From positions 248,001 to 312,000 of the IMG/VR virus record IMGVR_UViG_3300028394_002328: a stretch of DNA of 64,000 nucleotides; one strand, written 5' to 3'. The notes beneath the pieces are model-generated. The model was not told where the DNA came from. It was given only the letters and a program-made list of their open reading frames with translations, and made no database searches. This document shows, in pieces, positions 3,346 through 61,461 of the stretch. Position 1 is the first letter of the stretch. Each line of letters opens with the position of its first letter. Position numbers and translations under genes: made by a program.

Positions 3346-4099
3346 CCTACATTTAGAATTTGGTCCATTAGAATTGCTTGGTGGTGATGTATTGATCCTT
3401 GCTGGTGATATTTGCGAATACCGTACCTTTAAAAAAAGAAAATCATTTGTTACTGATTTCTTTGAGAAAGAATGTGCCAAATATGCACAAGTGTTTATGG
3501 TTAGTGGTAACCATGAATCTTATCATCACAGACTAGATAAAACCCACGAAGACTTTAAAGCAATATTGCCCAGCAATGTAACACTATTAGAAAATGAAAC
3601 TGTAGACTATAACAATATAGTGTTCATGGGCGCTACTATGTGGACTGACCTTAATCAGAATGATCCTGTTACTGAGATGACAGTTAAGGACGGAATGAAT
3701 GATTATAGGGCGATACAAAACTATTATGCCGACAAAAATTTATACCATAAATTAACACCTGATTATACCTACAAATTACATAAAAACACTATAGACTATT
3801 TTAAAAATACATTGGCTGAATATCAGGATCGTGATGTAGTAGTTATTACTCATCATGCCCCATCATATCAAAGTATCCATGAAAGATATAGTCATAATCA
3901 TCATATGAGCGGTGCTTATGCAAGTGACCTAAGTGAATTTATATTGGATCATCCACAGATTAAGGTTTGGTGTCATGGTCATGTCCATGACTTTTTTGAA
4001 TACCGCATTGGTTCTACTAGAGTAGTTTGCAATCCTCGTGGTTATGTTGGCTATGAGGCTAGCACATACGATTTTCAATTATATGATTTGGATATTTAA
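3323..4099 (+). CDS. calcineurin-like metallophosphoesterase
   Basis: SDLH, LAGD, GNHE, THH, HGHVH motifs. Confidence 0.9.
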   Translation: MKIELASDLHLEFGPLELLGGDVLILAGDICEYRTFKKRKSFVTDFFEKECAKYAQVFMVSGNHESYHHRLDKTHEDFKAILPSNVTLLENETVDYNNIVFMGATMWTDLNQNDPVTEMTVKDGMNDYRAIQNYYADKNLYHKLTPDYTYKLHKNTIDYFKNTLAEYQDRDVVVITHHAPSYQSIHERYSHNHHMSGAYASDLSEFILDHPQIKVWCHGHVHDFFEYRIGSTRVVCNPRGYVGYEASTYDFQLYDLDI

Positions 4100-9428: not shown

Positions 9429-9457
9429 TTGACATTTATTCCACTTTATCATATACT
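9429..9457 (+). promoter_or_regulatory. sigma70-type promoter
   Basis: TTGACA-17-TATACT. Confidence 0.8.
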
Positions 9458-9486
9458 ACTAGTATCGTAACTTATATGATACCAGT

Positions 9487-9870
9487 ATGACTATGCATCT
9501 AGCACACCCTGCTCTTACCTCCCTAGGAAAACGCAAGGGTAAACAAAAATTCCGTAATGCCGATGAAGCCCGCAAGGCTAGAGAATTAGAACAAGAGTGG
9601 GCAAAAAATAAAGCTAAATGGGACGCAATGCTAAAGCCTGTTGCTAAAAAAATTAAAACACAGGCTCCTAAACTAAGTCCTACTATCGCTAGAGAAACTC
9701 CACACATCCCTAGCCTTAATTTGGGTATCACAGGTGCGGTAACCTGTGCAAAGACTCCAATGTATACAGGTGACAAAATTATTGGTATTGGTACAATGCA
9801 TAAATCTAACGCAGTACCAATCTTTAATACTGAGCAGGCAAAAGATATTAGCACTATGCGTAGAAATTAA
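9487..9870 (+). CDS. conserved basic phage hypothetical protein
   Basis: [21 protein letters not shown] motif. Confidence 0.7.
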
Positions 9871-10087: not shown

Positions 10088-10122
10088 TGTAACAACTATC
10101 TTCTGTATTGTATAAATACAAC

Positions 10123-10677
10123 ATGCGAGATATTATTACATTACTTGAGGAAAAAACTAAACCTCAAGACATAGAAATTATTCCGTTGAATTTTACAGAC
10201 AGCGAGGTTAGTCCTGTGCTGTCTAAAGCCACTATAGACCTTCATTATGGTAAGTTAGCGCAAGGTTACGCTGAACGCTATAACAAAAAAGAAGGTGATA
10301 GAGATTTCAACTATGCAGGTGCTTTCCTGCATAATACATTGTTCCCACAATTCCGTGAAGTAAGAAACAATAACAACCCCAACGGCCCTATGCTAGGATT
10401 CGTCAATAAACATTTTGGCGACTATGATAATATGAAATCTGAGTTTGAAACTGAAGCCATGAAGATACAGGGTTCAGGTTGGATATATCTATCTACTGAT
10501 GGAAAGATTAAAACGATTGCGAATCATCAGGTACGCAACGATATATTATTGTTAATTGACTGGTGGGAACATGCTTGGATTTTAGATTACGGCAGTGATA
10601 AGAAAAAATACTTAAAAGAACAATGGAAGATTATCAACTGGAATGTGATTAACACAAGATGGGGGAAATCATTATGA
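10123..10677 (+). CDS. sod: Fe/Mn superoxide dismutase (divergent)
   Basis: [24 protein letters not shown]; metal ligands H, H, D, H appear retained. Confidence 0.85.
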
Positions 10678-19835: not shown

Positions 19836-19869
19836 GATCTGTGTTGCTAGTTGCTGACTCAATATAATA

Positions 19870-19898
19870 ATTATATCACCACGGGTATTTATTGTCAA
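19870..19898 (-). promoter_or_regulatory. sigma70-type early promoter
   Basis: TTGACAATAAAT...TATAAT, 17 nt spacer. Confidence 0.9.
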
Positions 19899-20200
19899 CT
19901 TTTGGGAACGGAGAAAGTGACTTTTTTCACGGATTTGATGGTAAAACTACGCCACGCTTGGGCTTCCAAATCATAGACGGCTAGGGTGTTTTCTGACTTT
20001 TTCCGTTCAGTTTTGCCCTCAGTCACAGGAGAAGGGGGAAGAATCTCAGGATCAAGAGTACATTTCATCACCCGTTCGGATCCGTCTTTTTTGGTAAAGG
20101 TTACGGTTACTTCATTGGAGTGCAATGCTCCCTTTAGCCAAGTGGTAAAGGTTGTCCAATCATTTTCAGCCCAATCTTCAGTTGGATTATACGGATTCAA
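19895..20200 (-). CDS. SH3-like beta-barrel protein (DUF2693/WYL-like)
   Basis: VTFTKKDGSERVMKCTL...VYDLEAQAWRSF. Confidence 0.75.
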   Translation of the reverse strand: MNPYNPTEDWAENDWTTFTTWLKGALHSNEVTVTFTKKDGSERVMKCTLDPEILPPSPVTEGKTERKKSENTLAVYDLEAQAWRSFTIKSVKKVTFSVPKS

Positions 20201-22246: not shown

Positions 22247-22252
22247 GTATAT

Positions 22253-22281
22253 ATTATAGCAAACCGCCCATTTATTGTCAA
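22253..22281 (-). promoter_or_regulatory. sigma70-type early promoter
   Basis: TTGACAATAAAT...TATAAT, 17 nt spacer. Confidence 0.9.
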
Positions 22282-22309
22282 GTGTTGTTTTATACAACAC
22301 TTTCCCACT

Positions 22310-26962: not shown

Positions 26963-26993
26963 ATTGACGCCCAAAAGTCACTGTCTGAACTAT

Positions 26994-27022
26994 AGTATAG
27001 CAAACTATAGAATATTTGTCAA
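26994..27022 (-). promoter_or_regulatory. sigma70-type promoter
   Basis: TTGACA-17-TATACT. Confidence 0.8.
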
Positions 27023-27648: not shown

Positions 27649-27708
27649 CTAGTATTTATGCAATGCGGCAATATCATATCTACAATGGCGTTGTATAAAT
27701 AACAATAT

Positions 27709-32770: not shown

Positions 32771-32811
32771 GATAGTTCCTTTTCTGTTCGTTTTTTCTCA
32801 CTACAGAAACT

Positions 32812-32840
32812 ATTATACATACCTACCGATTAATTGTCAA
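32812..32840 (-). promoter_or_regulatory. sigma70-type early promoter
   Basis: TTGACA-17-TATAAT. Confidence 0.88.
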
Positions 32841-33123: not shown

Positions 33124-33209
33124 TGGTGGAGTGTACTGGGATCGAACCAGTCGTGCCATAAAGACGGCGGATTTACAGTCCACTGCATCACCATTGATGC
33201 TTCCACTCC
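33124..33209 (-). tRNA. tRNA-Tyr (GTA)
   Basis: Long variable arm, CCA. Confidence 0.92.
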
Positions 33210-36474: not shown

Positions 36475-36520
36475 ATACTATATTTAATATATGAGCTAGG
36501 TTTAATAATATAAATATTGT

Positions 36521-37192
36521 ATGCCAAAAATAAATTATTTTTTAGATTCATACAAATATTTTTGCCAATTAAACCAAGATCCAATCACAGGTTCCGTATT
36601 AGACTATGGCTGTAACTATGGAATGTTTTTAGAAAGTAGCAGAAGTTTATTCTCTGAAAACATGTATACTGGTATAGATGTAGACTTAGAGGCATTGCAA
36701 GCTGGTAAGAAAATGTTTCCAAATGCAAAATTTATTCATTATGACAAACATAATTTTATGTACAACCCAACCGGGTCTAGAAGCCTTTGGCCTGACATTA
36801 ATGAACAATTTGATTGTATTATAAGTTATAGTGTCATAACACATACCACAAAAGAAGACATGTTAGATGCTATTGCCTGGCTCTATACTAAGTTGAAATC
36901 AGATAAAAAAATGTTTATTACTTGGTTAGATCAAGAAAATAAAATAGCATTAGCTTACTTTTATCAAAAACGTATGAAAGATTTTGGTAGTTGTGATAGG
37001 ATTCAAACAGAAGATTACGTTTATCTCATTGACAATAAAACATCCAAAGTACCCAATGATGGGATGTTTTTAGCTTTTTACAAAAAAGAATATTTGGCTA
37101 GCTTGTTGTCCGATTATGATTTTTCTTTAGAGCAATCACCTGATTTTACTAATAGATGTTTTCAAGACTGTATAATTATAAAGAAAATATAA
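36521..37192 (+). CDS. class I SAM-dependent methyltransferase
   Basis: VLDYGCNYG, GIDVD, YSVITH. Confidence 0.85.
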   Translation: MPKINYFLDSYKYFCQLNQDPITGSVLDYGCNYGMFLESSRSLFSENMYTGIDVDLEALQAGKKMFPNAKFIHYDKHNFMYNPTGSRSLWPDINEQFDCIISYSVITHTTKEDMLDAIAWLYTKLKSDKKMFITWLDQENKIALAYFYQKRMKDFGSCDRIQTEDYVYLIDNKTSKVPNDGMFLAFYKKEYLASLLSDYDFSLEQSPDFTNRCFQDCIIIKKI

Positions 37193-49686: not shown

Positions 49687-50321
49687 TTTTCAAGACTTAG
49701 ATATTAAATAACTGATGTACTATTTAGAATTGCCTAATTTTCCAACAGATGTGTTGACCGAGCAGTATCAACGTCCAGGCTCGTATGATATTAAAGTTAA
49801 TTATTGGAATGTTAAAATAGAATTTTTTAAAAAACAGATAATTGATTTTTTTGTAAGTCATAATCTAGAATTAAAAGATGGAGAAATATTTAAGAAAAGT
49901 CCCGGAATAATAGGTATTGTTCATACTGATGTTGTTTGGGATAGTTTTCAATCTGCATGGACCCGTTGGCATTGTGCTGTTAATATTAACCTTGACAACA
50001 CTAATTCATTGATGTATTGGTTTTCAACTACCGATACTGAAGTGTATCCCATGCCAGGAGCAACTGGATTAAGAGGAATTCATTATGGCACTAAAAATAA
50101 TAACAACTTTCATGACCGTGATGAATATACAGTCCTCGATAGTTTTTGCATTAATGGTCCAACGCTAGTAAGAACCAGTGTTCCTCACTTGGTTAAGAAT
50201 TTAGATAATAAAGATCGGTGGTGCCTTAGTCTAAGATTTAAGGGAAACCCAACTTTTGAAGAATGTGCTAAGAAATTGCTCCTTTAAAGTGATCTACGCC
50301 AAGACTACGAAGATTAATTTT
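49669..50321. repeat. 22-bp direct repeat flanking a single-gene cassette
   Basis: CAAGACTACGAAGATTAATTTT at 49669-49690 and 50300-50321. Confidence 0.9.
49715..50287 (+). CDS. cupin/2OG-Fe(II) oxygenase-like protein
   Basis: VHTD...AVNIN...VPHLVKN...RWCLSLRF. Confidence 0.6.
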   Translation: MYYLELPNFPTDVLTEQYQRPGSYDIKVNYWNVKIEFFKKQIIDFFVSHNLELKDGEIFKKSPGIIGIVHTDVVWDSFQSAWTRWHCAVNINLDNTNSLMYWFSTTDTEVYPMPGATGLRGIHYGTKNNNNFHDRDEYTVLDSFCINGPTLVRTSVPHLVKNLDNKDRWCLSLRFKGNPTFEECAKKLLL

Positions 50322-53706: not shown

Positions 53707-55159
53707 CTTCTTTTACCTCTACTGCCACTGGCATTTTTTCTGGGTTGGCTTCCCATGCTGCTCGTGCCGCATCTCCAATTTTACCTTCATACGGGCAAGG
53801 TGTGCCTGCGCTCCACATAGCATCAAACACACGGCGATCCTGACACATTGTGGCAACTGCTGCTACCTTCATACCCATATCGTAAAGTGTTTTGGCTAAC
53901 TTTAGTCTTTCGCAATTAACATCTCTAATAGTAGAACCACTACTAACACCAAAGATTTGTGTTTGAACAGCACCACTTACACCAGTGGTACATAGGTCAG
54001 CATTACCACCACTCATCATAGTAGGAGCGATTGCTGTAGGAGGGGGTTGTATAACTCTTTGTGTAATCTCTGACGAATTAATATTTCGGTTAGTCATGTC
54101 ACCAGTTTGTACATTTTGGTTGACATTGTTACTATTATTAGTATTACTACTAGTACTTGAACTTAAACTAGTGTTTACATTGTTATTGTTGTTGGTCATT
54201 GTACCTGAGTTAATGTTATTATTGGTATTAACATTACTGTTTGTGCTGGTGCTGTTATTAATATTTCTATTAGTCATGCTGCCACTAGTGATATTATTGT
54301 TAGTATTAACAGCAGTGCTAGTGCTTGCATTGTTATTGTTATAAGTCATTGTGCCAGTATTAACATTCACGTTTCTGTTAGTACTTGTGCTGGTACTAAC
54401 ATTATTATTGTTATTGGTCATCGTACCATAATTGTAATTGGTACTGTTATTAGTATTGACATTTCTGCTTGTACTAGTATTAACATTTTTATTGACATTA
54501 TTGCTAGTACTAGCGTTATTGTTATTGTATGTCATTGTACCGCTGTTGATATTGTTGTTGGTATTGACATTGTTACTAGTACTAGTGCTGGTACTGGCAT
54601 TATTGTTATTGTATGTCATTGTACCTGAATTAATATTGTTATTGGTATTGACACTGGTACTTGTGTTGGTATTGATATTACGGTTAGTCATATCACCACT
54701 ATTGACATTATTGTTGTTATATGTCATTGTACCACTATTAACATTGTTATTGGTATTAACACTAGTACTAACGTTATTATTGTTGTTAGTCATTGTTCCA
54801 GTGTTCACATTGTTATTGTTATAAGTAACAGTTCCGCTGTTAACATTGTTATTGTTATTGTTATAAGTAACAGTTCCGCTGTTGACATTGTTGTTGGTAA
54901 CCGTACCGCTTTGGATATTATTATTTGTATTAACGCTGGTATTGACGTTATTGCTGTTGCTGTTTACTGTACTAGTGCTCGTACTATTGCTGCTACTAGT
55001 ACTGGTATTTGTTGTATTGACACTGCTGGTACTATTACTAGTGCTATTAGTATCCACCAAAGTTTTAGAATCATAACTACCTTGATTAATTAAAGTTTGA
55101 CTATAGGCCGTACCCGTAAAAAAGACGATACTGGTAGATACCAATATTTTTTTAAGCAT
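53633..55159 (-). CDS. secreted Asn/Thr-rich repeat protein with Cys-rich C-terminal domain and TM tail
   Basis: Signal peptide; repeats such as NNNNVNSGTMTY; domain with four Cys; hydrophobic C-terminus. Confidence 0.8.
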   Translation of the reverse strand: MLKKILVSTSIVFFTGTAYSQTLINQGSYDSKTLVDTNSTSNSTSSVNTTNTSTSSSNSTSTSTVNSNSNNVNTSVNTNNNIQSGTVTNNNVNSGTVTYNNNNNNVNSGTVTYNNNNVNTGTMTNNNNNVSTSVNTNNNVNSGTMTYNNNNVNSGDMTNRNINTNTSTSVNTNNNINSGTMTYNNNNASTSTSTSNNVNTNNNINSGTMTYNNNNASTSNNVNKNVNTSTSRNVNTNNSTNYNYGTMTNNNNNVSTSTSTNRNVNVNTGTMTYNNNNASTSTAVNTNNNITSGSMTNRNINNSTSTNSNVNTNNNINSGTMTNNNNNVNTSLSSSTSSNTNNSNNVNQNVQTGDMTNRNINSSEITQRVIQPPPTAIAPTMMSGGNADLCTTGVSGAVQTQIFGVSSGSTIRDVNCERLKLAKTLYDMGMKVAAVATMCQDRRVFDAMWSAGTPCPYEGKIGDAARAAWEANPEKMPVAVEVKEDDTLKKIGLGSLLGIVAFKLFGFH

Positions 55160-55210
55160 AAACTTTTCCCCTATTGTTAGAGAAGTTACTTAATATTTAC
55201 TCGGTTACCA

Positions 55211-56212
55211 TTAACATTTATCTACTAAGTTATCTCTAAATATACGCCAACACTCTTCCCAACTCCAACGTAGACTAGCTTCTTCTACACGAACACGATC
55301 TAATCGCAAACATTGGTCAATAGCAGTCTTTAAATCCTCATCCATATAACCTGTTAGTCCCTGATCTATAACATCTTTAGGTCCAGTTACTGGATATGCT
55401 GCTACTGGTGTGCCACAAGCCATAGCTTCAATCATTACTATACCAAACGTATCCCAATAACTAGGGAATACGAATACATCAGCATCGGCGTAATACTTAG
55501 CTAGTTCTGCCCCACGTTTTACTCCTACGAATTCAACATCAGGATATTCACGCTCCATACGACGGCGGCATGGACCATCACCTACGACTATTTTGGTAGC
55601 ACTTGGATAGTATAATCTACAAAAATCATCTAAGTTTTTTTCTTTGCTGACACGCCCTACATTTAACAATATGGGCTGTGATAGTTCTGTAGCAGTTCTA
55701 GTGCTGCTGCTAAATATGGTACGATCAACCCCGCGAGTCCAAGGCTTGATGTCGGTTCTAAATCCACGACTAGCCAAATCATCAACCATGCTTTGTGTAG
55801 TGGTCAGTACACGACCACTATGTTTATGAAACCAACGCAAGTAACGATAACTCCAGTCAGTGGGTATGCCTGCAATTTTGTTTATGGCTTCGGGGAAACG
55901 AGTATGGTAGCTAGTATTATAACGCCATCCCCAATAGTCCATCCAGCAACGGGCAGCAAAGCCCACTGGACCTTCTGTAGCAATGTGTATGTAGTCGGGA
56001 TTTACTTTTTCAATAATCCTGCCAATGCCCCAGGTCCAACTAAGTTTGATTTCACCATAGCCAGGACAGGGAATATTAACAAACTGCCGGGGATCAAGAT
56101 AAACAAAATCATAGCCATCCCGCTCAGCCAAAACTTCCAGGTTATGAAAGGTAGTAACAACACCATTAACCTGCGTTGGTTCATTGTCGGTTATGATTAA
56201 TACTGTCTTCAT
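55211..56212 (-). CDS. GT4 glycosyltransferase, Agt-like diacylglycerol glycosyltransferase
   Basis: TD...QVNGVV, HIATEGPVG, SYHTRFPE, VGRVSKEKN, DTFGIVMIEAMACGTPV. Confidence 0.85.
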   Translation of the reverse strand: MKTVLIITDNEPTQVNGVVTTFHNLEVLAERDGYDFVYLDPRQFVNIPCPGYGEIKLSWTWGIGRIIEKVNPDYIHIATEGPVGFAARCWMDYWGWRYNTSYHTRFPEAINKIAGIPTDWSYRYLRWFHKHSGRVLTTTQSMVDDLASRGFRTDIKPWTRGVDRTIFSSSTRTATELSQPILLNVGRVSKEKNLDDFCRLYYPSATKIVVGDGPCRRRMEREYPDVEFVGVKRGAELAKYYADADVFVFPSYWDTFGIVMIEAMACGTPVAAYPVTGPKDVIDQGLTGYMDEDLKTAIDQCLRLDRVRVEEASLRWSWEECWRIFRDNLVDKC

Positions 56213-56966
56213 TTTCACGCACCTCTGCCCATGTTACGATTTCCCAGCGACCATCCCAATGTTCAACTAGTGCTGTACAACTTTCACACCAGTCACCATC
56301 GTTCATGTAGATTACGCCGTTGATTTCTTTGATTTCAGCCTTATGTATATGCCCACAGATCACACCATCGTAGCCCTTCTTTTTGCAATAACCGGCTAGA
56401 TTTTGTTCAAATTGAAACATAAAGTCTACCGCTTTTTTGACCCGGTGCTTAAGGTACAAGCTAAGGCTCCAGTAGCCAAAACCCAAACGATGACGAATCC
56501 AATTGAATTTAGTATTGATATTGAGTACGCAGTCATATGCTTTGTCTCCTAATATGCTGAGCCAAGGGGCCAGCCTAGTAATACCATCAAATAAATCACC
56601 ATGAACTACAAGATACCTTTTTCCATCTATACCGGTGTGAATAGCCTGATTACAGATTTTAATACGACCAAAACTAACACCATATGGTATAAGTGGGCGT
56701 AAAAATTCATCATGATTGCCTGCCACATAAACTACTTGTGTTCCGCGTTTGGCATGACCTAATACACGGCGAATTACATTGGTATGACTTTGATGCCACT
56801 TTAGAGTGTTCTGTTTCATTTTCCACGCATCTATAATATCGCCTACTAGATACAACGTTTCGCAACTATTATGTTTTAAAAAGTTGTTTAGATAGTCTGC
56901 TTTACAGGCTTTAGTACCGAGGTGTACATCACTAATAGAGATTGTACGGTAAGTTGTTTGCGGCAT
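56181..56966 (-). CDS. PlcP-like Mn-dependent phospholipase C (LpxH/YbbF metallophosphoesterase family)
   Basis: SDVHLG, LVGDIID, GNHDEFLR, HGDLFD, GYWSLS, CGHIH, NDGDWCESCTAL. Confidence 0.85.
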   Translation of the reverse strand: MPQTTYRTISISDVHLGTKACKADYLNNFLKHNSCETLYLVGDIIDAWKMKQNTLKWHQSHTNVIRRVLGHAKRGTQVVYVAGNHDEFLRPLIPYGVSFGRIKICNQAIHTGIDGKRYLVVHGDLFDGITRLAPWLSILGDKAYDCVLNINTKFNWIRHRLGFGYWSLSLYLKHRVKKAVDFMFQFEQNLAGYCKKKGYDGVICGHIHKAEIKEINGVIYMNDGDWCESCTALVEHWDGRWEIVTWAEVRENEDSINHNRQ

Positions 56967-56971
56967 AATAC

Positions 56972-57006
56972 TATTTAATGTTTAATATATTACAAAGCTG
57001 TTACAA
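56972..57006 (-). promoter_or_regulatory. Pho-box-like repeat plus TAAATA promoter (plcP-agt)
   Basis: TGTAAC-N5-TGTAAT-N11-TAAATA. Confidence 0.75.
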
Positions 57007-57010
57007 TCAT

Positions 57011-57035
57011 AAAAAAAGAGCCATATGGCCCTTTA
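57011..57035 (-). terminator. intrinsic terminator
   Basis: AAAGGGCC-ATAT-GGCTCTTTTTTT. Confidence 0.75.
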
Positions 57036-57117
57036 GTGCTGGTTACGAGCGTCCAGCGATCCCTCTATCTTGGGCCCGTTTTAAACAAACTACTAAACCA
57101 GCGTTTTGCGCTGGTAA

Positions 57118-57759
57118 TTACTTTCCCAATAAACTATCAACCTTCGCTTCAGCAACATTCAACCGATGCTCAATATCATCTAGTGCAGGATCTGCTGGAG
57201 CGGAAACTGCTTCAAATATTTGTTGATGAACTTCAGAATTAACTGCTTCTCCTGTTGCTGTTGAAACAATATGAGCTACCGCAGCGGCAATTTCTTCTGT
57301 ACCTGCAGTTGGTGCAGGCATTTCAGCAACTGCTGCTGTAATAGCGGCTGTAATTGCTTCAGGGTCTGTGACAACTTCAGGCTCTGCTGTAACAACTGCT
57401 AGTACCGCTGCTTTTACAATATCAGCAACTTCAGGGTTAACAATTGCATCTGCTTCGTGTTGAGCAGCTACTACATCGCCAACAATGCCTGCGGCTTCTG
57501 CATGGTCAGCACTTGGTGAAAGTGCTAGTACATCTTCAACAGAAACTGGTGCTTCATCAGCTACGGAATAAACAATGGCGTCAATATGGCTCTCAGTTTT
57601 TTCAGCGATCAAATGATCAACTTGAACTTCAACAACTGACAATCTGGTGTCTAGTTCTTCAATGCTTGTGGCATAATCTGTGTTAACTTCTGTGCCAGTT
57701 AGTGTTGCTAACTTAGCTTCTACTGCTACTAATCTTGCGGCTAAATCTTGTAATCTCAT
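57118..57759 (-). CDS. acidic Ala/Val-rich coiled-coil protein
   Basis: Start moved to 57759 (AAGGAG SD); three LxxRLxxxExxx repeats. Confidence 0.75.
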   Translation of the reverse strand: MRLQDLAARLVAVEAKLATLTGTEVNTDYATSIEELDTRLSVVEVQVDHLIAEKTESHIDAIVYSVADEAPVSVEDVLALSPSADHAEAAGIVGDVVAAQHEADAIVNPEVADIVKAAVLAVVTAEPEVVTDPEAITAAITAAVAEMPAPTAGTEEIAAAVAHIVSTATGEAVNSEVHQQIFEAVSAPADPALDDIEHRLNVAEAKVDSLLGK

Positions 57760-57805
57760 GGGTTGCTCCTTTAGGTTAGGTGAGTGAATCATGTCCACTC
57801 ACCCT

Positions 57806-57840
57806 TATTTAACTGCTACTATATTAAAGTATTATTACAA
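57806..57840 (-). promoter_or_regulatory. Pho-box-like repeat plus TAAATA promoter
   Basis: TGTAAT-N5-TTTAAT-N11-TAAATA. Confidence 0.6.
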
Positions 57841-57844
57841 AATA

Positions 57845-59419
57845 TCAGAAACTCAATAATAGTAGCTGTCCACCTTCAATTAATTCAGCAGCATTAGCAC
57901 CAGTTGCTGCTTTGTGATTTTGATCAACCAATAAGAAGTAACGCTTGCCATCAGTACGACCTAAGATACTGGTGATTTCAATGATACCACTGGATTCTTC
58001 GTCATTGGTCTCAGTTCCAACAACACCTGTGTAATAATCACCAAACAGCTTCTCATCATGTTGAGCAAGTAGTGTTAGTGCCTTGGTAACAGGATTGTAT
58101 CTCCAAATCTTACCATTGTGATTGTTACCACCCACATCTTCTTGTAGAATGATTGTGCCATCGCTAGCAACAGTCATGTTGTCAAACATCTGTGTGCCAT
58201 GAACACGACCGGCAACAGTAACTGTTTCAGTACCATCGAGCACCATTTCAAGGATACCACCCGATTCAGGACGGGTTAAATCAGTAAATGTCATGCTCCA
58301 AAGGCGTGTGCGACCAACTTGAGCAGTATTAGTAATACTGGTATTGATCTTGCCCCCGGTGTTGTCTTTAGCAGCATCTACTGTGTTGGTTGTTACAAAG
58401 TAGTAGCGGTTCTTGTTAACTGTATCCCAAGCACCATCTTCTGGACGCAAGAAACTTGTACCAGCAACACCAGTTACAGGAACATTGGGAACAAAACTAA
58501 ATGTAGCAGTCTTGTTGACTAGTCCTAAACCAGCATCAGTAGCAGTGGTTTCATTAGCAGCAACACCACCAACATTGACCACAGCACGATACAGCGTACC
58601 ATTGGTTAGGCCTGCTTTATCAACTTCAGTAGCACCAGTCTTGTTCTTAGTGCCGACATACATATAAACACCATTGCTGCCACTGTCGCTATTGGCCATA
58701 ACAATGGTCTTATCGCCGCTGTTAGGATGTGCGATTAGATTTTCCCAGCCTACACCAAATGTGGTAAATCCACCAAAGTGTGGGAGAATGTATGCTTTGC
58801 CTTTGTCTGCTCCACTAGCCACAATAGCAACACCCCGACCCATTGTAACAGTACCGTTAGCGGTTTCTTCACCAGTCATAAACATTTTAACCGAAGAACC
58901 ATTGCCTGTTGCTGAGTTGAAGAAAGCGCCGGCTGCTGGTAGATCGGCTGAACAGAAACGCTGAAATGCTACAGCAGTTTGCTCGGCCCAAGCACCATTG
59001 ACCTGTGCATAAACTTTTTTCATTAGGTCACTACCGCTCTTGACCTGTAGAGTAGTTTTATCAATAACCCACTCACTAACAAAAGCACCAATACCACCAT
59101 GAGCACGGGCAATACCAACAGTGTTGGCCAGTTCATGAGCCATTAGCACGGTGAATGTGTTGTCACCATTGTCGTAAGCACCTAGCCCATCCGGGATACC
59201 TACCATGCGATAAGTGCCAACAGCGTCACCAACGGTTAAGATACTGGCAACTTTTACGCTGCTGTCAATTGGTGTGATATAAGGATCTGCTGAACTACTA
59301 GTTGCTTTGCCTGATGTAAAACCAGTAACTTCTTTGGGTGCTGCTACAGTGGTGTCATCGCTACCACATGCTGTTAATAGAGCCGTTGCTACGGCTACTG
59401 CTAGAACGGTATATTTCAT
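57845..59419 (-). CDS. PhoX-like alkaline phosphatase lipoprotein
   Basis: Lipobox LTAC; PDGLG, HE, RFCS, GEE, WEN, RPED, DN, QED, ESSG. Confidence 0.75.
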   Translation of the reverse strand: MKYTVLAVAVATALLTACGSDDTTVAAPKEVTGFTSGKATSSSADPYITPIDSSVKVASILTVGDAVGTYRMVGIPDGLGAYDNGDNTFTVLMAHELANTVGIARAHGGIGAFVSEWVIDKTTLQVKSGSDLMKKVYAQVNGAWAEQTAVAFQRFCSADLPAAGAFFNSATGNGSSVKMFMTGEETANGTVTMGRGVAIVASGADKGKAYILPHFGGFTTFGVGWENLIAHPNSGDKTIVMANSDSGSNGVYMYVGTKNKTGATEVDKAGLTNGTLYRAVVNVGGVAANETTATDAGLGLVNKTATFSFVPNVPVTGVAGTSFLRPEDGAWDTVNKNRYYFVTTNTVDAAKDNTGGKINTSITNTAQVGRTRLWSMTFTDLTRPESGGILEMVLDGTETVTVAGRVHGTQMFDNMTVASDGTIILQEDVGGNNHNGKIWRYNPVTKALTLLAQHDEKLFGDYYTGVVGTETNDEESSGIIEITSILGRTDGKRYFLLVDQNHKAATGANAAELIEGGQLLLLSF

Positions 59420-59444
59420 TTTAAAACTCCTTTTGTATGTTTGT

Positions 59445-60425
59445 TTATTTGACTAACTTTGCCCAATCGGCACGAACTTGATCCTTAACCTTTTGGGGTA
59501 ATGGAACATAATCTAGGTCTGTAGCGTCCTTGTCACCCTTTGTATAGACCCAATCAAAAAATTTGGTAACTTGTTTTGTTCGCTCTCCAGTAGGATATAT
59601 GAGAATAAATGTAGCGGCAGTAATAGGCCATCCATCTAAATCATTGAGATTAACTGCCATGTTGGGCACTGACCAGTCAGCAGTCTTGGCACTTTCAGCA
59701 AATGTTAAGTCATCTGGTTGAACTACAGCACCTTTGCGGTTCTTCATGGCCACATGAGTTAGTTTGCTCTGTTTAGCAAATGCGTACTCAACATAACCAA
59801 TTGATCCTGCCAGTTGTTGAACGTTGGCAGCAACACCAGCATTGCCCTTACCTGCTGACAAGTTTGTGGGCTTCCAAGTAACTGTTTTACCCGTACCGGT
59901 ACCTGCTTTAAAATCAGGATTTACTTTGCTTAAGTAATCAGTAAACACAGCAGTTGTACCTGATCCATCAGCACGAACCACTACGTTGATAGCAGCATCA
60001 GGTAATGCTAGACTTGGATTGAGTTTTGTAATAGCAGCATCGTTCCACTTGCTGATTTTACCTTGATAAATGTCGGCTAGTGTCTTGCCATCAAGAATCA
60101 TTTTACCTGGCTCAATACCTTTGATATTGATTACAGCAACAACTCCACCGATAACTGATGGGAATTGATATAGCCCAACTTCTTTTAATTTATTGTCTGG
60201 TGTAGGATCATCACTTGCACCAAAATCTACGGTTTTAGCAATGATTTGAGCAACACCACCGCCACTTCCGATTGGATTGTAGTTAACAGTAGTACCAGTT
60301 TCTTTGTTGTAGGCTGCTGCCCATTTTGAATAAATAGGAGCCGGGAAAGTTGCCCCGGCTCCAGTAATCTGTGCTTGTGCAGCAAATGCGGCTGCGGCTA
60401 ATAGAATTCCAACAATTTTCTTCAT
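59445..60425 (-). CDS. pstS: phosphate ABC transporter substrate-binding protein
   Basis: GAGATFPAP, GSGGG, DFGASD, RADGSGTT, IGYVE. Confidence 0.97.
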   Translation of the reverse strand: MKKIVGILLAAAAFAAQAQITGAGATFPAPIYSKWAAAYNKETGTTVNYNPIGSGGGVAQIIAKTVDFGASDDPTPDNKLKEVGLYQFPSVIGGVVAVINIKGIEPGKMILDGKTLADIYQGKISKWNDAAITKLNPSLALPDAAINVVVRADGSGTTAVFTDYLSKVNPDFKAGTGTGKTVTWKPTNLSAGKGNAGVAANVQQLAGSIGYVEYAFAKQSKLTHVAMKNRKGAVVQPDDLTFAESAKTADWSVPNMAVNLNDLDGWPITAATFILIYPTGERTKQVTKFFDWVYTKGDKDATDLDYVPLPQKVKDQVRADWAKLVK

Positions 60426-60463
60426 TTGATTTCCTTTAATAATATGTGCTCTTGCACAATTAT

Positions 60464-60498
60464 TATTTAATAATAATTATGTTACAGGAATATTACAA
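60464..60498 (-). promoter_or_regulatory. Pho-box-like repeat plus TAAATA promoter (pstS-phoX)
   Basis: TGTAAT-N5-TGTAAC-N11-TAAATA. Confidence 0.8.
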
Positions 60499-60529
60499 GG
60501 CGCCCAAAATGAATAATATTTTTAAAACT

Positions 60530-60913
60530 TTATTGAACAGTCCGTTTTGATTTGTAATCTTCTATTGCCGATTTAATCGCATCTTCTGCTAAGATTGAGC
60601 AGTGGATTTTGACTGGCGGGAGAGCGAGTTCTTCCGCAATCTGTGTGTTTCTAATTGTTGCTGCCTCGTCGAGGGTTTTGCCTTTAACCCACTCTGTGAC
60701 AAGACTTGAGCTAGCAATCGCTGACCCGCACCCATACGTTTTAAATCTAGCATCTTCTATTACTCCATTCTCATTTACTTTAATTTGAAGTTTCATCACA
60801 TCTCCGCATGCCGGGGCTCCGACTAGTCCGGTGCCTATTGTATCGTCAATTTCAAATTTTCCAACATTGCGTGGGTTTTCATAATGATCAACTACTTGAG
60901 GTGAATAAGCCAT
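60530..60913 (-). CDS. iscU: Fe-S cluster scaffold
   Basis: DHYENPRNVG, APACGD, YGCGSAIASSS, LPPVKIHCS. Confidence 0.97.
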   Translation of the reverse strand: MAYSPQVVDHYENPRNVGKFEIDDTIGTGLVGAPACGDVMKLQIKVNENGVIEDARFKTYGCGSAIASSSLVTEWVKGKTLDEAATIRNTQIAEELALPPVKIHCSILAEDAIKSAIEDYKSKRTVQ

Positions 60914-60933
60914 GTTGTTCTCCTTTTCTTTAT

Positions 60934-61461
60934 TTAATCGTTTTTATCAGATTCAAAAACTATCCAACCCAATTTAAATAGGTCAGATTTAATCTCTTCT
61001 GTGACTTCACCTTCTCCAACATAGCCTTTTGAACCGTCTTCGTCACCGTTACCAAGGCCACTGCCCATGCCAGAACAATACCAATCCATGTAATCACCCT
61101 GTTGTCTAATATCTGCTACAATTCCACCAGCATATCGCCAACTACAACTCCATTTTTTCTCATTAAGTATAGGCCATACTTCATTCTTTATAAATTCATT
61201 GTTGCACAAGGCAGCATAAAGACTCTGAGCATATCTATCATCTTTGCACTTTTCTGCTATCCAATCAGAAGTTAACAGATCGTACTCCATATTGTTTTCT
61301 TGCCACATAGGATCTAACTCATCCTCTTTTCTTTTTTTAATCATGTTTTCCCACATGTCAAGATATTCTTGATTAGGAGTTTGATTTTCTTCCTTGCATC
61401 GTTTTATATAACTTGTTCGTTGGAAAGAATACTTGTTAGGACTAGAACGAAGTTTAGACAT
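60934..61461 (-). CDS. conserved hypothetical phage protein
   Basis: LYAALCNN...WSCSWR...DYMDWYCSG. Confidence 0.7.
   Translation of the reverse strand: MSKLRSSPNKYSFQRTSYIKRCKEENQTPNQEYLDMWENMIKKRKEDELDPMWQENNMEYDLLTSDWIAEKCKDDRYAQSLYAALCNNEFIKNEVWPILNEKKWSCSWRYAGGIVADIRQQGDYMDWYCSGMGSGLGNGDEDGSKGYVGEGEVTEEIKSDLFKLGWIVFESDKND

Follow-up and report, generated by a model that had tools for sequence, protein, structure and literature searches.

In a giant phage from lake water, three identically built promoters pair a Pho box, the predicted binding site of the bacterial phosphate-starvation regulator PhoB, with TAAATA, the minimal promoter motif of the phage itself. They precede phage-borne genes with predicted roles in phosphate scavenging and lipid remodelling, and hundreds of uncultured phages use the same design. 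We analysed a stretch of 64,000 nt (here termed the window; positions 248,001 to 312,000 of IMG/VR record IMGVR_UViG_3300028394_002328), to which all coordinates refer. Control by PhoB is well supported, although inferred from sequence alone, whereas reading of the core by phage late machinery, and hence an AND gate, is plausible but unproven.

The composite promoters and the genes behind them

The initial annotation had described a Pho-box-like repeat exactly 11 nt upstream of TAAATA before pstS, plcP and a gene for an acidic protein. This observation is confirmed, all three sites being present exactly as described (60497-60464, 57839-57806 and 57005-56972, minus strand). The pattern TGTAAY-N5-TKTAAY-N11-TAAATA has no other match in the window on either strand, even if two mismatches are allowed. 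In 100 dinucleotide-preserving shuffles we obtained a mean of 0.31 matches at up to two mismatches, and none of the shuffles reached three. The double repeat alone (TKTAAY-N5-TKTAAY) also occurs only at these three places. The elements of the region, all on the minus strand, are as follows.

60481-60497 (-): Pho box of the pstS promoter, TGTAAT-ATTCC-TGTAAC, two direct half-sites with an 11-bp period
60464-60469 (-): TAAATA core (-10-type element) of the pstS promoter, 11 nt after the box, preceded by T
60445-60458 (-): hairpin TGTGC-AAGA-GCACA starting 5 nt after TAAATA, a likely 5'-terminal stem-loop of the pstS mRNA
59445-60425 (-): pstS, periplasmic phosphate-binding protein (326 aa, with a signal peptide), ATG at 60425
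57845-59419 (-): PhoX-like alkaline phosphatase (524-aa lipoprotein), assigned by resemblance only
57823-57839 (-): Pho box of the acidic-protein promoter, TGTAAT-AATAC-TTTAAT, with a degenerate second half-site
57806-57811 (-): TAAATA core of the acidic-protein promoter, preceded by T
57778-57804 (-): 9-bp hairpin GGGTGAGTG-N9-CACTCACCT in the leader of the acidic gene
57118-57759 (-): acidic coiled-coil protein (213 aa), a virus-only family of unknown function
57035-57090 (-): conserved two-hairpin RNA-like motif, followed by a terminator hairpin and T run at about 57011-57033
56989-57005 (-): Pho box of the plcP promoter, TGTAAC-AGCTT-TGTAAT
56972-56977 (-): TAAATA core of the plcP promoter, preceded by T and 5 nt before the ATG
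56181-56966 (-): plcP-like metallophosphoesterase, the phospholipase C type used in lipid remodelling, ATG at 56966
55211-56218 (-): GT4 glycosyltransferase overlapping the plcP stop, in the Agt-like partner position of PlcP

The gene labels of the initial annotation hold. PstS matches Pfam PBP_like_2 (E 1.8e-33), and the plcP product is a calcineurin-like phosphoesterase (Pfam Metallophos, E 8e-11; annotated elsewhere as LpxH-like) with more than 8000 close homologues in metagenomes and 49% identity to a gene of the cultured Pelagibacter phage Mosig. The glycosyltransferase matches Pfam Glyco_trans_1_4 (E 2.5e-23), and the same gene pair occurs in L131 (a contig with the same promoter architecture) and other contigs. 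The lipoprotein, left unnamed in the initial annotation, gave no Pfam hit in an HMM search, but ESM Atlas features scored 0.96 and 91 of its 100 nearest clusters carry PF05787 (PhoX). It is probably co-transcribed with pstS, as there is no promoter motif in the 25-nt gap between the two genes. For the acidic protein we take the ATG at 57759 as the true start, judged from homologues that begin MRxEDLAxRL and from an AAGGAG Shine-Dalgarno site. This protein has no Pfam hit, its nearest Atlas clusters are all viral and unnamed, and homologues sit behind the composite promoter at eight IMG/VR sites.

Hairpins similar to the one in the pstS leader, with compensatory changes, occur in 13 of 30 pstS promoters and in 8 of 8 acidic-gene promoters of relatives. 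For the RNA-like motif upstream of plcP, we aligned 45 distinct copies, in which compensatory changes support the first stem and the outer pair of the second stem; a search of Rfam gave no match. Lake metatranscriptome contigs identical to the window cover 57126-60445, a stretch that starts just downstream of the pstS core and ends at the terminator region. These contigs show only that pstS through the acidic gene is present in lake RNA libraries, and they did not cover plcP or the glycosyltransferase, although those genes have the same promoter type.

Pho box identity and spread of the design

The repeat is a Pho box in sequence, period, orientation, distance to the -10 position and regulon content, as the initial annotation had proposed from its 11-bp period. 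The pstS box is conserved in three relatives (L002, L004 and L005), and as CTGTAATAAAACTGTAAC in the distant L006, and the homologous acidic-gene promoters of relatives have TGTAAT-N5-TGTAAT. Canonical TGTCAY half-sites substitute for TGTAAY in the same architecture (in L131 and in 10 of 39 pstS promoters) and, conversely, 19 of 43 bacterial phoB promoters carry a TGTAAY half-site. No TTGACA-like hexamer lies 17 bp upstream of TAAATA; instead, the box takes the place of the -35 element. The register equals the bacterial layout box-N10-nnnAAT, including the E. coli-type TTTCAT-AAATC-TGTCAT-N10-CATAAT, so that the AAT of TAAATA aligns with the AAT of nnnAAT in the 43 bacterial phoB promoters. 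The genes behind the boxes (pstS, PhoX-like, PlcP/GT4) form a textbook Pho regulon.

In IMG/VR, 84 of 126 exact matches to the composite lie directly before homologues of pstS (36), plcP (40) or the acidic protein (8), while others precede a porin, a Na/Pi cotransporter, a second phosphoesterase and a PBP. In samples retrieved by protein, 49 of 65 phage pstS upstreams and 25 of 72 plcP upstreams carry a box (a strict one in the case of plcP). Information is 2 bits at TGTAA and at TAAATA, but only 0.1-1.1 bits in the spacers, whose pairwise identity is 0.40. Of the 72 related phage promoters that pair a box with TAAATA, 13 have N21/22 instead of N11; about a fifth to two fifths of related phage promoters place the strict box one helical turn further upstream.

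The TAAATA core in phages and bacteria

According to the initial annotation, TAAATA is found before many late-type genes of the window. That it precedes many other genes is true, since 36 of its 104 copies lie within 60 nt upstream of a called start. TAAATA is also the core of a second, generic promoter class of this phage, with no conserved -35: the 33 window sites examined have no information upstream of position -2, and their distances to the ATG are bimodal (2-8 nt and 13-27 nt, often 4-7 nt). In related loci the motif is enriched 6.7-fold upstream of non-Pho genes. This class looks like T4-type late promoters. In phage Mosig, which has an annotated late sigma, structural genes carry the motif, and both the tail tube gene and plcP have TAAATA-N5-ATG. 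In the window, the plcP core lies 5 nt before the ATG, which implies a leaderless or near-leaderless mRNA; in relatives, TAAATA ends 4-6 nt (mode 5) before the plcP ATG in 37 of 72 upstreams and overlaps the ATG in four more.

In the phage Pho promoters of the samples retrieved by protein, the core is essentially invariant. All 25 strict plcP boxes are followed by TAAATA at N11 or N21/22, and 47 of 49 pstS boxes by exact TAAATA, with one TAAGTA variant, whereas bacterial phoB promoters show 23 different hexamers, only 2 of 43 being TAAATA (Fisher p = 5e-12). It has to be considered that the phage promoters are related by descent, so the counts are not independent. The core fits both grammars. 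However, it differs from the generic class at the preceding base, which is T at all three window sites and A in 0 of 47 related pstS promoters, but A in 18/27 generic sites of the window, 115/259 in related loci and 9/13 in Mosig (44-69%). The T4 late consensus TATAAATA is not matched, as only TAAATA is fixed. A sigma-70-type -10 hexamer would have A at -11 and T at -7: in the N10 register the hexamer is TTAAAT, with T at -11, and in the N11 register it is TAAATA, with A at -7. Bacterial phoB promoters also vary at -11, and 2 of 43 have the same sequence. In 15 of 39 pstS promoters a TG, which is a sigma-70 feature, lies in the extended -10 register for a hexamer nTAAAT.

No gp55 or gp45 homologue was found in the 64-kb window by phmmer (E > 0.4), the remaining 271 kb of the 335-kb contig lying outside the analysis. 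Distant T4-type core genes (UvsW, gp15-like, sheath and TerL) were found only in other contigs that share the early-promoter consensus, not in this contig.

Interpretation and comparison with known systems

We consider these the promoters of a phage-borne Pho regulon. In the proposed mechanism, phosphorylated PhoB of the phosphate-starved, as yet unidentified host would bind the two direct TGTAAY half-sites, with the box spanning about -40 to -24, and recruit RNA polymerase to the minimal core, transcription starting about 5-7 nt downstream. Three units would be switched on: pstS and the phoX-like gene, which would take up phosphate and scavenge organic phosphorus, the acidic protein of unknown role, and plcP with the glycosyltransferase, which would replace phospholipids with glycolipids. 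In this view the same hexamer serves about 30 other non-early genes as a -10-only, T4-late-type promoter, and PhoB makes a deliberately weakened late-type core, never having the preceding A, fire. The genes would then be expressed only in a P-starved host and could still be transcribed after the phage has switched the polymerase away from sigma-70. Our data establish the architecture and its conservation, its restriction to Pho-type genes, its identity with bacterial Pho boxes, and the contrast between an invariant core in phages and variable -10 elements in bacteria. PhoB binding and P-dependence are inferred, though with good support; that late machinery reads the core, either alone with PhoB or in addition to sigma-70, is an inference about as likely as not. 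As a whole, we regard this explanation as slightly more likely than not. The interpretation of the initial annotation, that host PhoB or a phage OmpR-family regulator gates transcription by the late machinery as an AND gate for P starvation and late phase, is thus only partly supported, as neither late reading at these three promoters nor the AND gate has been shown. Precedents exist for host PhoB controlling phage genes (PMC10976474) and for PhoB acting together with a non-housekeeping sigma (PMC4971064).

The main alternative, which we hold to be less likely but a serious possibility, is that these are ordinary host-type PhoB/sigma-70 promoters, captured with the genes or copied from the host, in which the Pho box replaces the -35 and nTAAAT(A) is simply the -10. 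The likeness of nTAAAT(A) to the generic motif would then be a coincidence between AT-rich -10-like elements, and expression would depend on P starvation only and last as long as sigma-70 holoenzyme is available. Use by sigma-70 alone, named beforehand as refuting the hybrid, is indeed not excluded. The exact composite precedes phoB in proteobacterial MAGs (L134, L136, L228 and L229 are such bacterial phoB loci) and pstS in Bryobacterales (bacterial pstS loci L239 and L252), besides 2 of 43 unselected bacterial phoB promoters, so that sigma-70 with PhoB can presumably use it. The identical geometry, the TG and the missing A point the same way. PhoB activates through sigma-70 region 4, and the usual E. 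coli layout is given in PMC4971064. In T4 the beta flap is taken by gp33 and the DNA just upstream by the clamp (PMC2988020), so a PhoB dimer at -40 to -24 would need a different contact. Yet this alternative does not explain why all six positions of TAAATA are fixed in 72 of 74 unselected phage promoters while spacers drift to 40% identity. In either register one of the two key sigma-70 positions is violated in every phage promoter, and the phage's own sigma-70 promoters use near-perfect TATAAT, which no Pho promoter does. Furthermore, the N21/22 variants do not fit the class II layout, and the leaderless TAAATA-N5-ATG layout of plcP is that of the generic class and of a Mosig late gene.

A phage-encoded regulator, of the OmpR/PhoB family or unrelated, by which the phage would control these genes by its own programme, could be invoked because only 64 of 335 kb were covered and the acidic protein always travels with the motif, but we consider it very unlikely. 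A tblastn search revealed no PhoB-like gene in the window or in about 1.1 Mb of related phage loci, and no response-regulator family appeared among the top 25 Pfam families of the window ORFs. Also, the boxes are interchangeable with canonical TGTCAY boxes and identical to those before bacterial phoB and pstS, and the controlled genes are a textbook Pho regulon. A chance arrangement, conceivable in an AT-rich window (36% GC) in which TAAATA is common, is refuted by the conservation data: spacing is fixed at N11, or one helical turn more, across hundreds of diverged contigs. A further reading, possible but rather unlikely, is that PhoB acts as the site-specific activator of a T4-type, -35-less late promoter, taking over the role of gp33 and the sliding clamp at ordinary late promoters. 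A crippled late core would then fire only in phosphate-starved cells. If true, this would be a genuine host-sensor/phage-sigma AND gate, conserved across hundreds of freshwater phages, that keeps nutrient control of auxiliary genes alive after sigma-70 has been displaced.

The E. coli-type PhoB-dependent promoters (phoA, phoB, pstS, phoE), in which the pho box replaces the -35 and sits about 10 bp upstream of the -10, share with the phage sites the two direct half-sites with 11-bp period and orientation, the lack of a -35 hexamer, the register to the AAT and the kinds of genes controlled (pstS, a phosphatase and, in relatives, a porin). They differ in that the phage half-sites are mostly TGTAAY rather than TGTCAY, that the -10 position holds an invariant TAAATA lacking either A at -11 or T at -7, that the strict box is one helical turn further upstream in about a fifth to two fifths of related phage promoters, and that the promoters sit in a phage genome. 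In cyanophages (P-SSM2 pstS/phoA, and S-PM2d; PMC10976474), phage pstS and phosphatase genes likewise exploit the host's two-component phosphate sensor through Pho boxes. However, cyanobacterial boxes are PyTTAAPyPy(T/A) repeats, loosely predicted and often failing to predict binding (PMC10976474), whereas ours, recognised from sequence alone, are of the proteobacterial TGT(A/C)AY type, the single TTTAAT half-site being the only resemblance. Here the box is rigidly coupled to a fixed core at a fixed distance, and the regulon adds plcP/glycosyltransferase lipid remodelling.

T4-type late promoters (gp55, gp33, gp45), including the (A)TAAATA sites of Mosig, share a -10-only AT-rich box about one helical turn upstream of the start, the absence of a -35, tight adherence to the consensus, use on both strands and in divergent pairs, and frequent short or absent leaders (PMC2988020). 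Here, only six of the eight positions are fixed, and in the three Pho promoters the upstream A is absent and the -35 region is occupied by a predicted activator site, which T4 late promoters do not have; gp55, gp33 and gp45 have not been identified in this phage. In Pseudomonas aeruginosa, the sigma-VreI promoters pdtA and phdA (PMC4971064) combine a pho box with a core read by a non-housekeeping specificity factor, and both factors are needed, making a natural AND gate for P starvation and a second signal. There, the box lies upstream of a -35/-10 pair recognised by an ECF sigma of the bacterium itself, whereas the phage promoters have no -35 and the second factor would be an unidentified phage product. 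Finally, the PlcP-Agt lipid renovation operon of SAR11 and other marine heterotrophs (PMC4796936) has the same pair of a metallophosphoesterase-type phospholipase C followed by a glycosyltransferase, and the same expected inducer, P starvation, but in our case the pair, with activities predicted only, is encoded by a phage and placed behind a leaderless late-type core.

Composite promoters and their genomic setting
Three sites of the same build were found on the minus strand of the window, each lying directly before a gene:

60497-60464, minus strand: TGTAAT-ATTCC-TGTAAC-N11-TAAATA, before pstS (59445-60425; PBP_like_2).
57839-57806, minus strand: TGTAAT-AATAC-TTTAAT-N11-TAAATA, before the gene of an acidic coiled-coil protein, whose real start is the ATG at 57759.
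57005-56972, minus strand: TGTAAC-AGCTT-TGTAAT-N11-TAAATA, before a calcineurin-type phosphoesterase of the PlcP kind (56181-56966).

No other match was present on either strand of the 64 kb, even if two mismatches were allowed; 100 dinucleotide-preserving shuffles gave a mean of 0.31 such matches and none gave three. The double repeat on its own is likewise confined to these three places. The observation made in the initial annotation, namely three identically built promoters with a Pho-box-like repeat 11 nt upstream of TAAATA, is thus real, far beyond chance and much more general than could be seen from the window alone. pstS is followed by the gene of a 524-aa lipoprotein which is not recognised by Pfam, although 91 of its 100 nearest ESM-Atlas clusters are PhoX alkaline phosphatases. 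The acidic protein belongs to a virus-only family with no named relative. The stop of the plcP-like gene is overlapped by a GT4 glycosyltransferase gene, the gene pair known from lipid remodelling under P starvation (PMC4796936).

The window, positions 248001-312000 of a 335-kb IMG/VR contig, has a GC content of 36% and 18 tRNA genes; a nineteenth tRNA-like sequence (33127-33209, minus strand) is reported by Rfam (34.3 bits) but not called by ARAGORN. It carries many auxiliary genes, including IscU/IscA, two TctC receptors, four radical-SAM proteins, ClpP, Fe/Mn SOD, IF-1, two fatty-acid desaturases, rubrerythrin and a papain-like protease. One ORF matches RNA_pol_Rpb6, the omega subunit family (E 1e-8), and a phage-encoded omega-like protein hints that the phage modifies the host polymerase. 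A DNA search of cultured phages yielded nothing close (5 weak hits), and Pfam and PHROGs gave nothing for most of the large ORFs of the window, leaving the family of the phage without assignment on these grounds.

Upstream regions in the window fall into two promoter classes. The first is an unusually uniform sigma-70 consensus, TTGACAATAAAT-N11-TATAAT, which we regard as an early promoter. It precedes small genes at 605-2400, 9487, 19683, 21905, 26387 and 32564 (window regions 560-2400, 9430-9490, 19840-19900, 22250-22300, 26965-27020 and 32775-32840). An exact scan found it in at least 120 IMG/VR loci, several of which hold distant T4-type UvsW, gp15-like, sheath and terminase genes, pointing to a large, largely uncultured clade that shares its promoter grammar. 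The second class consists only of TAAATA. Of the 104 TAAATA copies, 36 lie within 60 nt of a called start. An alignment of 33 sites without Pho boxes showed no information upstream of position -2, an A at -1 in 21 of 33, and a bimodal distribution of distances to the ATG, 2-8 nt and 13-27 nt. This is the anatomy of T4-type late promoters, i.e. a tightly kept AT box one turn upstream of the start, no -35 and use on either strand (PMC2988020). Thirteen window genes (for example at 10111-10125, 27649-27665, 36509-36523, 49700-49717 and 56964-56977) have TAAATA only 2-8 nt before the ATG and no Shine-Dalgarno site, which implies leaderless or near-leaderless mRNAs as a regular feature of this phage. 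In related loci, the same layout peaks at 5 nt.

The likeness is confirmed by a cultured comparator, Pelagibacter phage Mosig (Kyanoviridae), which has an annotated late sigma and clamp. Its tail tube, prohead core and protease, portal and neck genes are preceded by (A)TAAATA, and both its tail tube gene and its plcP homologue (49% identical) have TAAATA-N5-ATG, and its pstS has TTAAATA. In this phage, pstS and plcP are divergently transcribed from a 150-bp spacer (L414, our Mosig locus, 3842-3991; MT647606.1 93979-94128), each with a TAAATA core. The repeats there are TTTAAC/CTTAAC with an 11-bp period, 48 nt from the plcP core, and may be the SAR11 version of a Pho box in a different geometry. 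On the other hand, a phmmer search (--max) of the window with gp55 and gp45 of Mosig and gp55 of L003 (IMGVR_UViG_3300032287_000734) found nothing below E 0.4, and loci bearing the composite promoter rarely include structural genes in their flanks, so T4-likeness could not be tied to them directly. The late-type label therefore rests on resemblance and not on identified machinery. L003 itself is a T4-like contig (1-9476) whose MCP is 63% and gp55 59% identical to those of Mosig. It carries a pstS 86% identical to that of the window, inserted between the MCP and tail tube genes, with a terminator and an inverted CTGTAATAAAACTGTCAT box right before the Shine-Dalgarno site in its upstream region and no TAAATA, which suggests pstS exchange between very different phages and a different regulatory wiring.

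Identity of the repeat and conservation of the core
The repeat has the 11-bp period and direct orientation of CTGTCAT-N4-CTGTCAT. In relatives, the canonical half-site replaces the variant within the same architecture, for example as TGTCAC-AGAAT-TGTCAT before plcP on a 513-kb contig, and 10 of 39 pstS promoters have one or two TGTCAY half-sites. In a distant pstS relative (57% identity) the box reads CTGTAATAAAACTGTAAC. We also retrieved bacterial phoB genes from metagenomes by protein similarity alone: of 75 distinct upstream regions, 43 have a box, and 19 of those use at least one TGTAAY half-site. Among them is the enterobacterial form TTTCAT-AAATC-TGTCAT-N10-CATAAT, which fixes the register. 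In that register the bacterial promoters read box-N10-nnnAAT, and the AAT of the phage TAAATA falls exactly on that AAT. No -35-like hexamer lies 17 bp upstream of TAAATA, and the genes behind the boxes are a textbook Pho regulon. Two other readings were rejected: that of the upstream half-site TTGTAA as a -35, since its distance to TAAATA is 23 nt and that of the downstream half-site 12 nt, and that of TAAATA as a third PhoB half-site, since it is out of phase with the 11-bp period. A tblastn search with a bacterial PhoB against the window and about 1.1 Mb of related loci found no phage PhoB.

An exact-pattern scan of IMG/VR gave at least 120 loci. Of the 126 sites in these loci, 84 lie directly before homologues of pstS (36), plcP (40) or the acidic protein (8), at 47-98% protein identity. 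Most of the remaining sites have the weaker TTTAAY half-site and look like chance, while a few precede a porin, a Na/Pi cotransporter, another phosphoesterase or a PBP. As this sample was selected on the motif, we drew two further samples by protein similarity only. For plcP, 41 of 72 distinct upstream regions have exact TAAATA, which ends 4-6 nt (mode 5) before the ATG in 37 and overlaps the ATG in 4. All 25 strict boxes are followed by TAAATA, 15 at N11 and 10 at N21/22; the rest are mostly operon-internal. For pstS, 49 of 65 distinct upstream regions have a strict box, and 47 of those are followed by TAAATA (42 at N11, 3 at N21, 2 with an extra half-site), whereas one carries the variant TAAGTA. 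Across the 15 N11 plcP promoters, the information content is 2 bits at TGTAA and TAAATA and 0.1-1.1 bits elsewhere, and the spacers are 40% identical pairwise. Box, spacing and core are therefore under selection, and the remainder has drifted.

Transcripts and predicted RNA structures at the locus
The only public RNA libraries holding this stretch are three lake-water metatranscriptomes. In one of them, contigs identical to the window cover 57126-60445. They begin 19 nt downstream of the pstS core, at the end of a hairpin, run through the PhoX-like and acidic genes, and stop before the terminator region. This agrees with a start just after TAAATA and an independent pstS unit, although it has to be considered that these are contigs of low depth without direction or read ends, and that DNA carry-over cannot be excluded. 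Nothing identical covers the promoter, iscU or plcP and the glycosyltransferase gene (55100-57069), although the latter two have the same promoter type; this may be due to low depth or reflect real differential expression. iscU (60530-60913) has its own TTAAATA plus a Shine-Dalgarno site and no Pho box (60914-60960, minus strand). As no terminator is evident between iscU and the pstS box (60470-60530, minus strand), some read-through into pstS is possible.

The following RNA-like elements were seen on the minus strand:

60445-60458, minus strand: hairpin after the TAAATA core of the pstS promoter.
57778-57804, minus strand: hairpin after the TAAATA core of the acidic-gene promoter.
57035-57090, minus strand: conserved two-hairpin RNA-like motif between the acidic gene and the plcP promoter.
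about 57011-57033, minus strand: terminator following this motif.

The two window hairpins start 1-5 nt after the core. In 8 of 8 acidic-gene promoters and 13 of 30 pstS promoters of relatives, conserved hairpins with compensatory changes begin 0-6 nt after TAAATA. They are probably 5'-terminal stem-loops that stabilise the mRNAs, but an operator palindrome is not excluded. The two-hairpin motif (AAAyCGrnCAC-AAnGATAGA-GTGnCG-CTGGA-ACTCGTAA-CCAG), 45-55 nt in length, recurs in 45 distinct copies in related phage loci, with compensatory changes in stem 1 and in the outer pair of stem 2, and has no match in Rfam. In relatives it takes three positions: it follows pstS or the acidic gene, forms the leader of plcP, or stands alone behind its own Pho-box/TAAATA promoter. 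It is a candidate Pho-regulated small RNA or cis element.

Reading of the core and relation to known systems
This raises the question if the core is the phage's own element or just a -10. Bacterial phoB promoters show 23 different hexamers at the same place, and only 2 of 43 are TAAATA, whereas related phages keep it in 72 of 74 cases. Fisher's test for the N11 plcP set against the bacteria gave p = 5e-12, though the phage sites share ancestry. In either register one key sigma-70 position is violated (T at -11 or A at -7), the phage's own sigma-70 promoters use TATAAT but no Pho promoter does, and the leaderless layout of plcP is that of the generic TAAATA class and of a Mosig late gene. On the other hand, plain use by sigma-70 remains a serious rival. 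A pattern scan of 185,579 species genomes, from which no host could be identified, was dominated by chance hits in AT-rich taxa but also returned true Pho promoters in several unrelated phyla; the exact composite was found before phoB in four proteobacterial MAGs and before pstS in two Bryobacterales genomes of about 60% GC, every one with T before TAAATA, as at the window sites. The register is the class II PhoB register, and 15 of 39 pstS promoters have TG exactly where an extended -10 would be for a hexamer nTAAAT, while none has it in the neighbouring registers. PhoB works through sigma-70 region 4; in T4 the flap is occupied by gp33 and the adjoining DNA by the clamp (PMC2988020). The position of the first transcribed base does not separate sigma-70 from T4-late geometry, since TAAATA-N5-ATG fits both depending on the register chosen. 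A further fact fits an activator-dependent design: the base before TAAATA is never A in 47 pstS promoters (T 30, C 11, G 6), but is A in 18 of 27 generic sites of the window, 115 of 259 in related loci and 9 of 13 in Mosig. The Pho promoters thus carry the late-type core stripped of its upstream extension.

The element therefore lies in the intersection of two grammars, namely what bacterial PhoB promoters tolerate at the -10 (nnnAAT at N10) and what the second promoter class of the phage requires (TAAATA). The interpretation put forward in the initial annotation, in which host PhoB or a phage OmpR-family regulator gates transcription by the phage late machinery as an AND gate, is supported in part. 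Its Pho-box component is right, and the hybrid architecture is real in the sense that box and phage core are combined and co-conserved, which the sequence comparisons show directly. That host PhoB binds these boxes and switches the three units on in P-starved cells is inferred, but we consider it well supported. That the late-type machinery of the phage reads the core here, either together with PhoB as an AND gate or in addition to a sigma-70 route, is likewise inferred, and we consider the chances roughly even; the AND gate is a good hypothesis that sequence alone cannot settle.

The composite provides a sharply defined 34-nt signature that finds phage genes with predicted Pho regulation directly in metagenomes, about two thirds of its exact matches found in IMG/VR lying before pstS, plcP or the one virus-only protein. 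It also poses the question whether an OmpR/PhoB-family activator can work on a -10-only phage late promoter, or whether the phage keeps a sigma-70 route open for nutrient-responsive genes. The answer determines when during infection, and in which lakes, these phages rewire host phosphorus and membrane metabolism.

PhoB cooperating with a non-housekeeping sigma has a precedent in Pseudomonas, where PhoB and sigma-VreI are both required (PMC4971064). Precedents for host PhoB acting on phage promoters exist in cyanophages (PMC10976474). Such control of phage phosphate genes has so far been demonstrated only in marine cyanophages, where prediction of the boxes is unreliable. Relative to these systems, the promoters described here represent a new form of inferred PhoB control of phage auxiliary genes, in which a Pho box is joined to a phage core. 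They extend the phage-borne Pho regulon to lipid remodelling (plcP plus a glycosyltransferase), a PhoX-like phosphatase, porins and Na/Pi transporters, and tie a virus-only acidic protein and a new RNA motif to the same loci.
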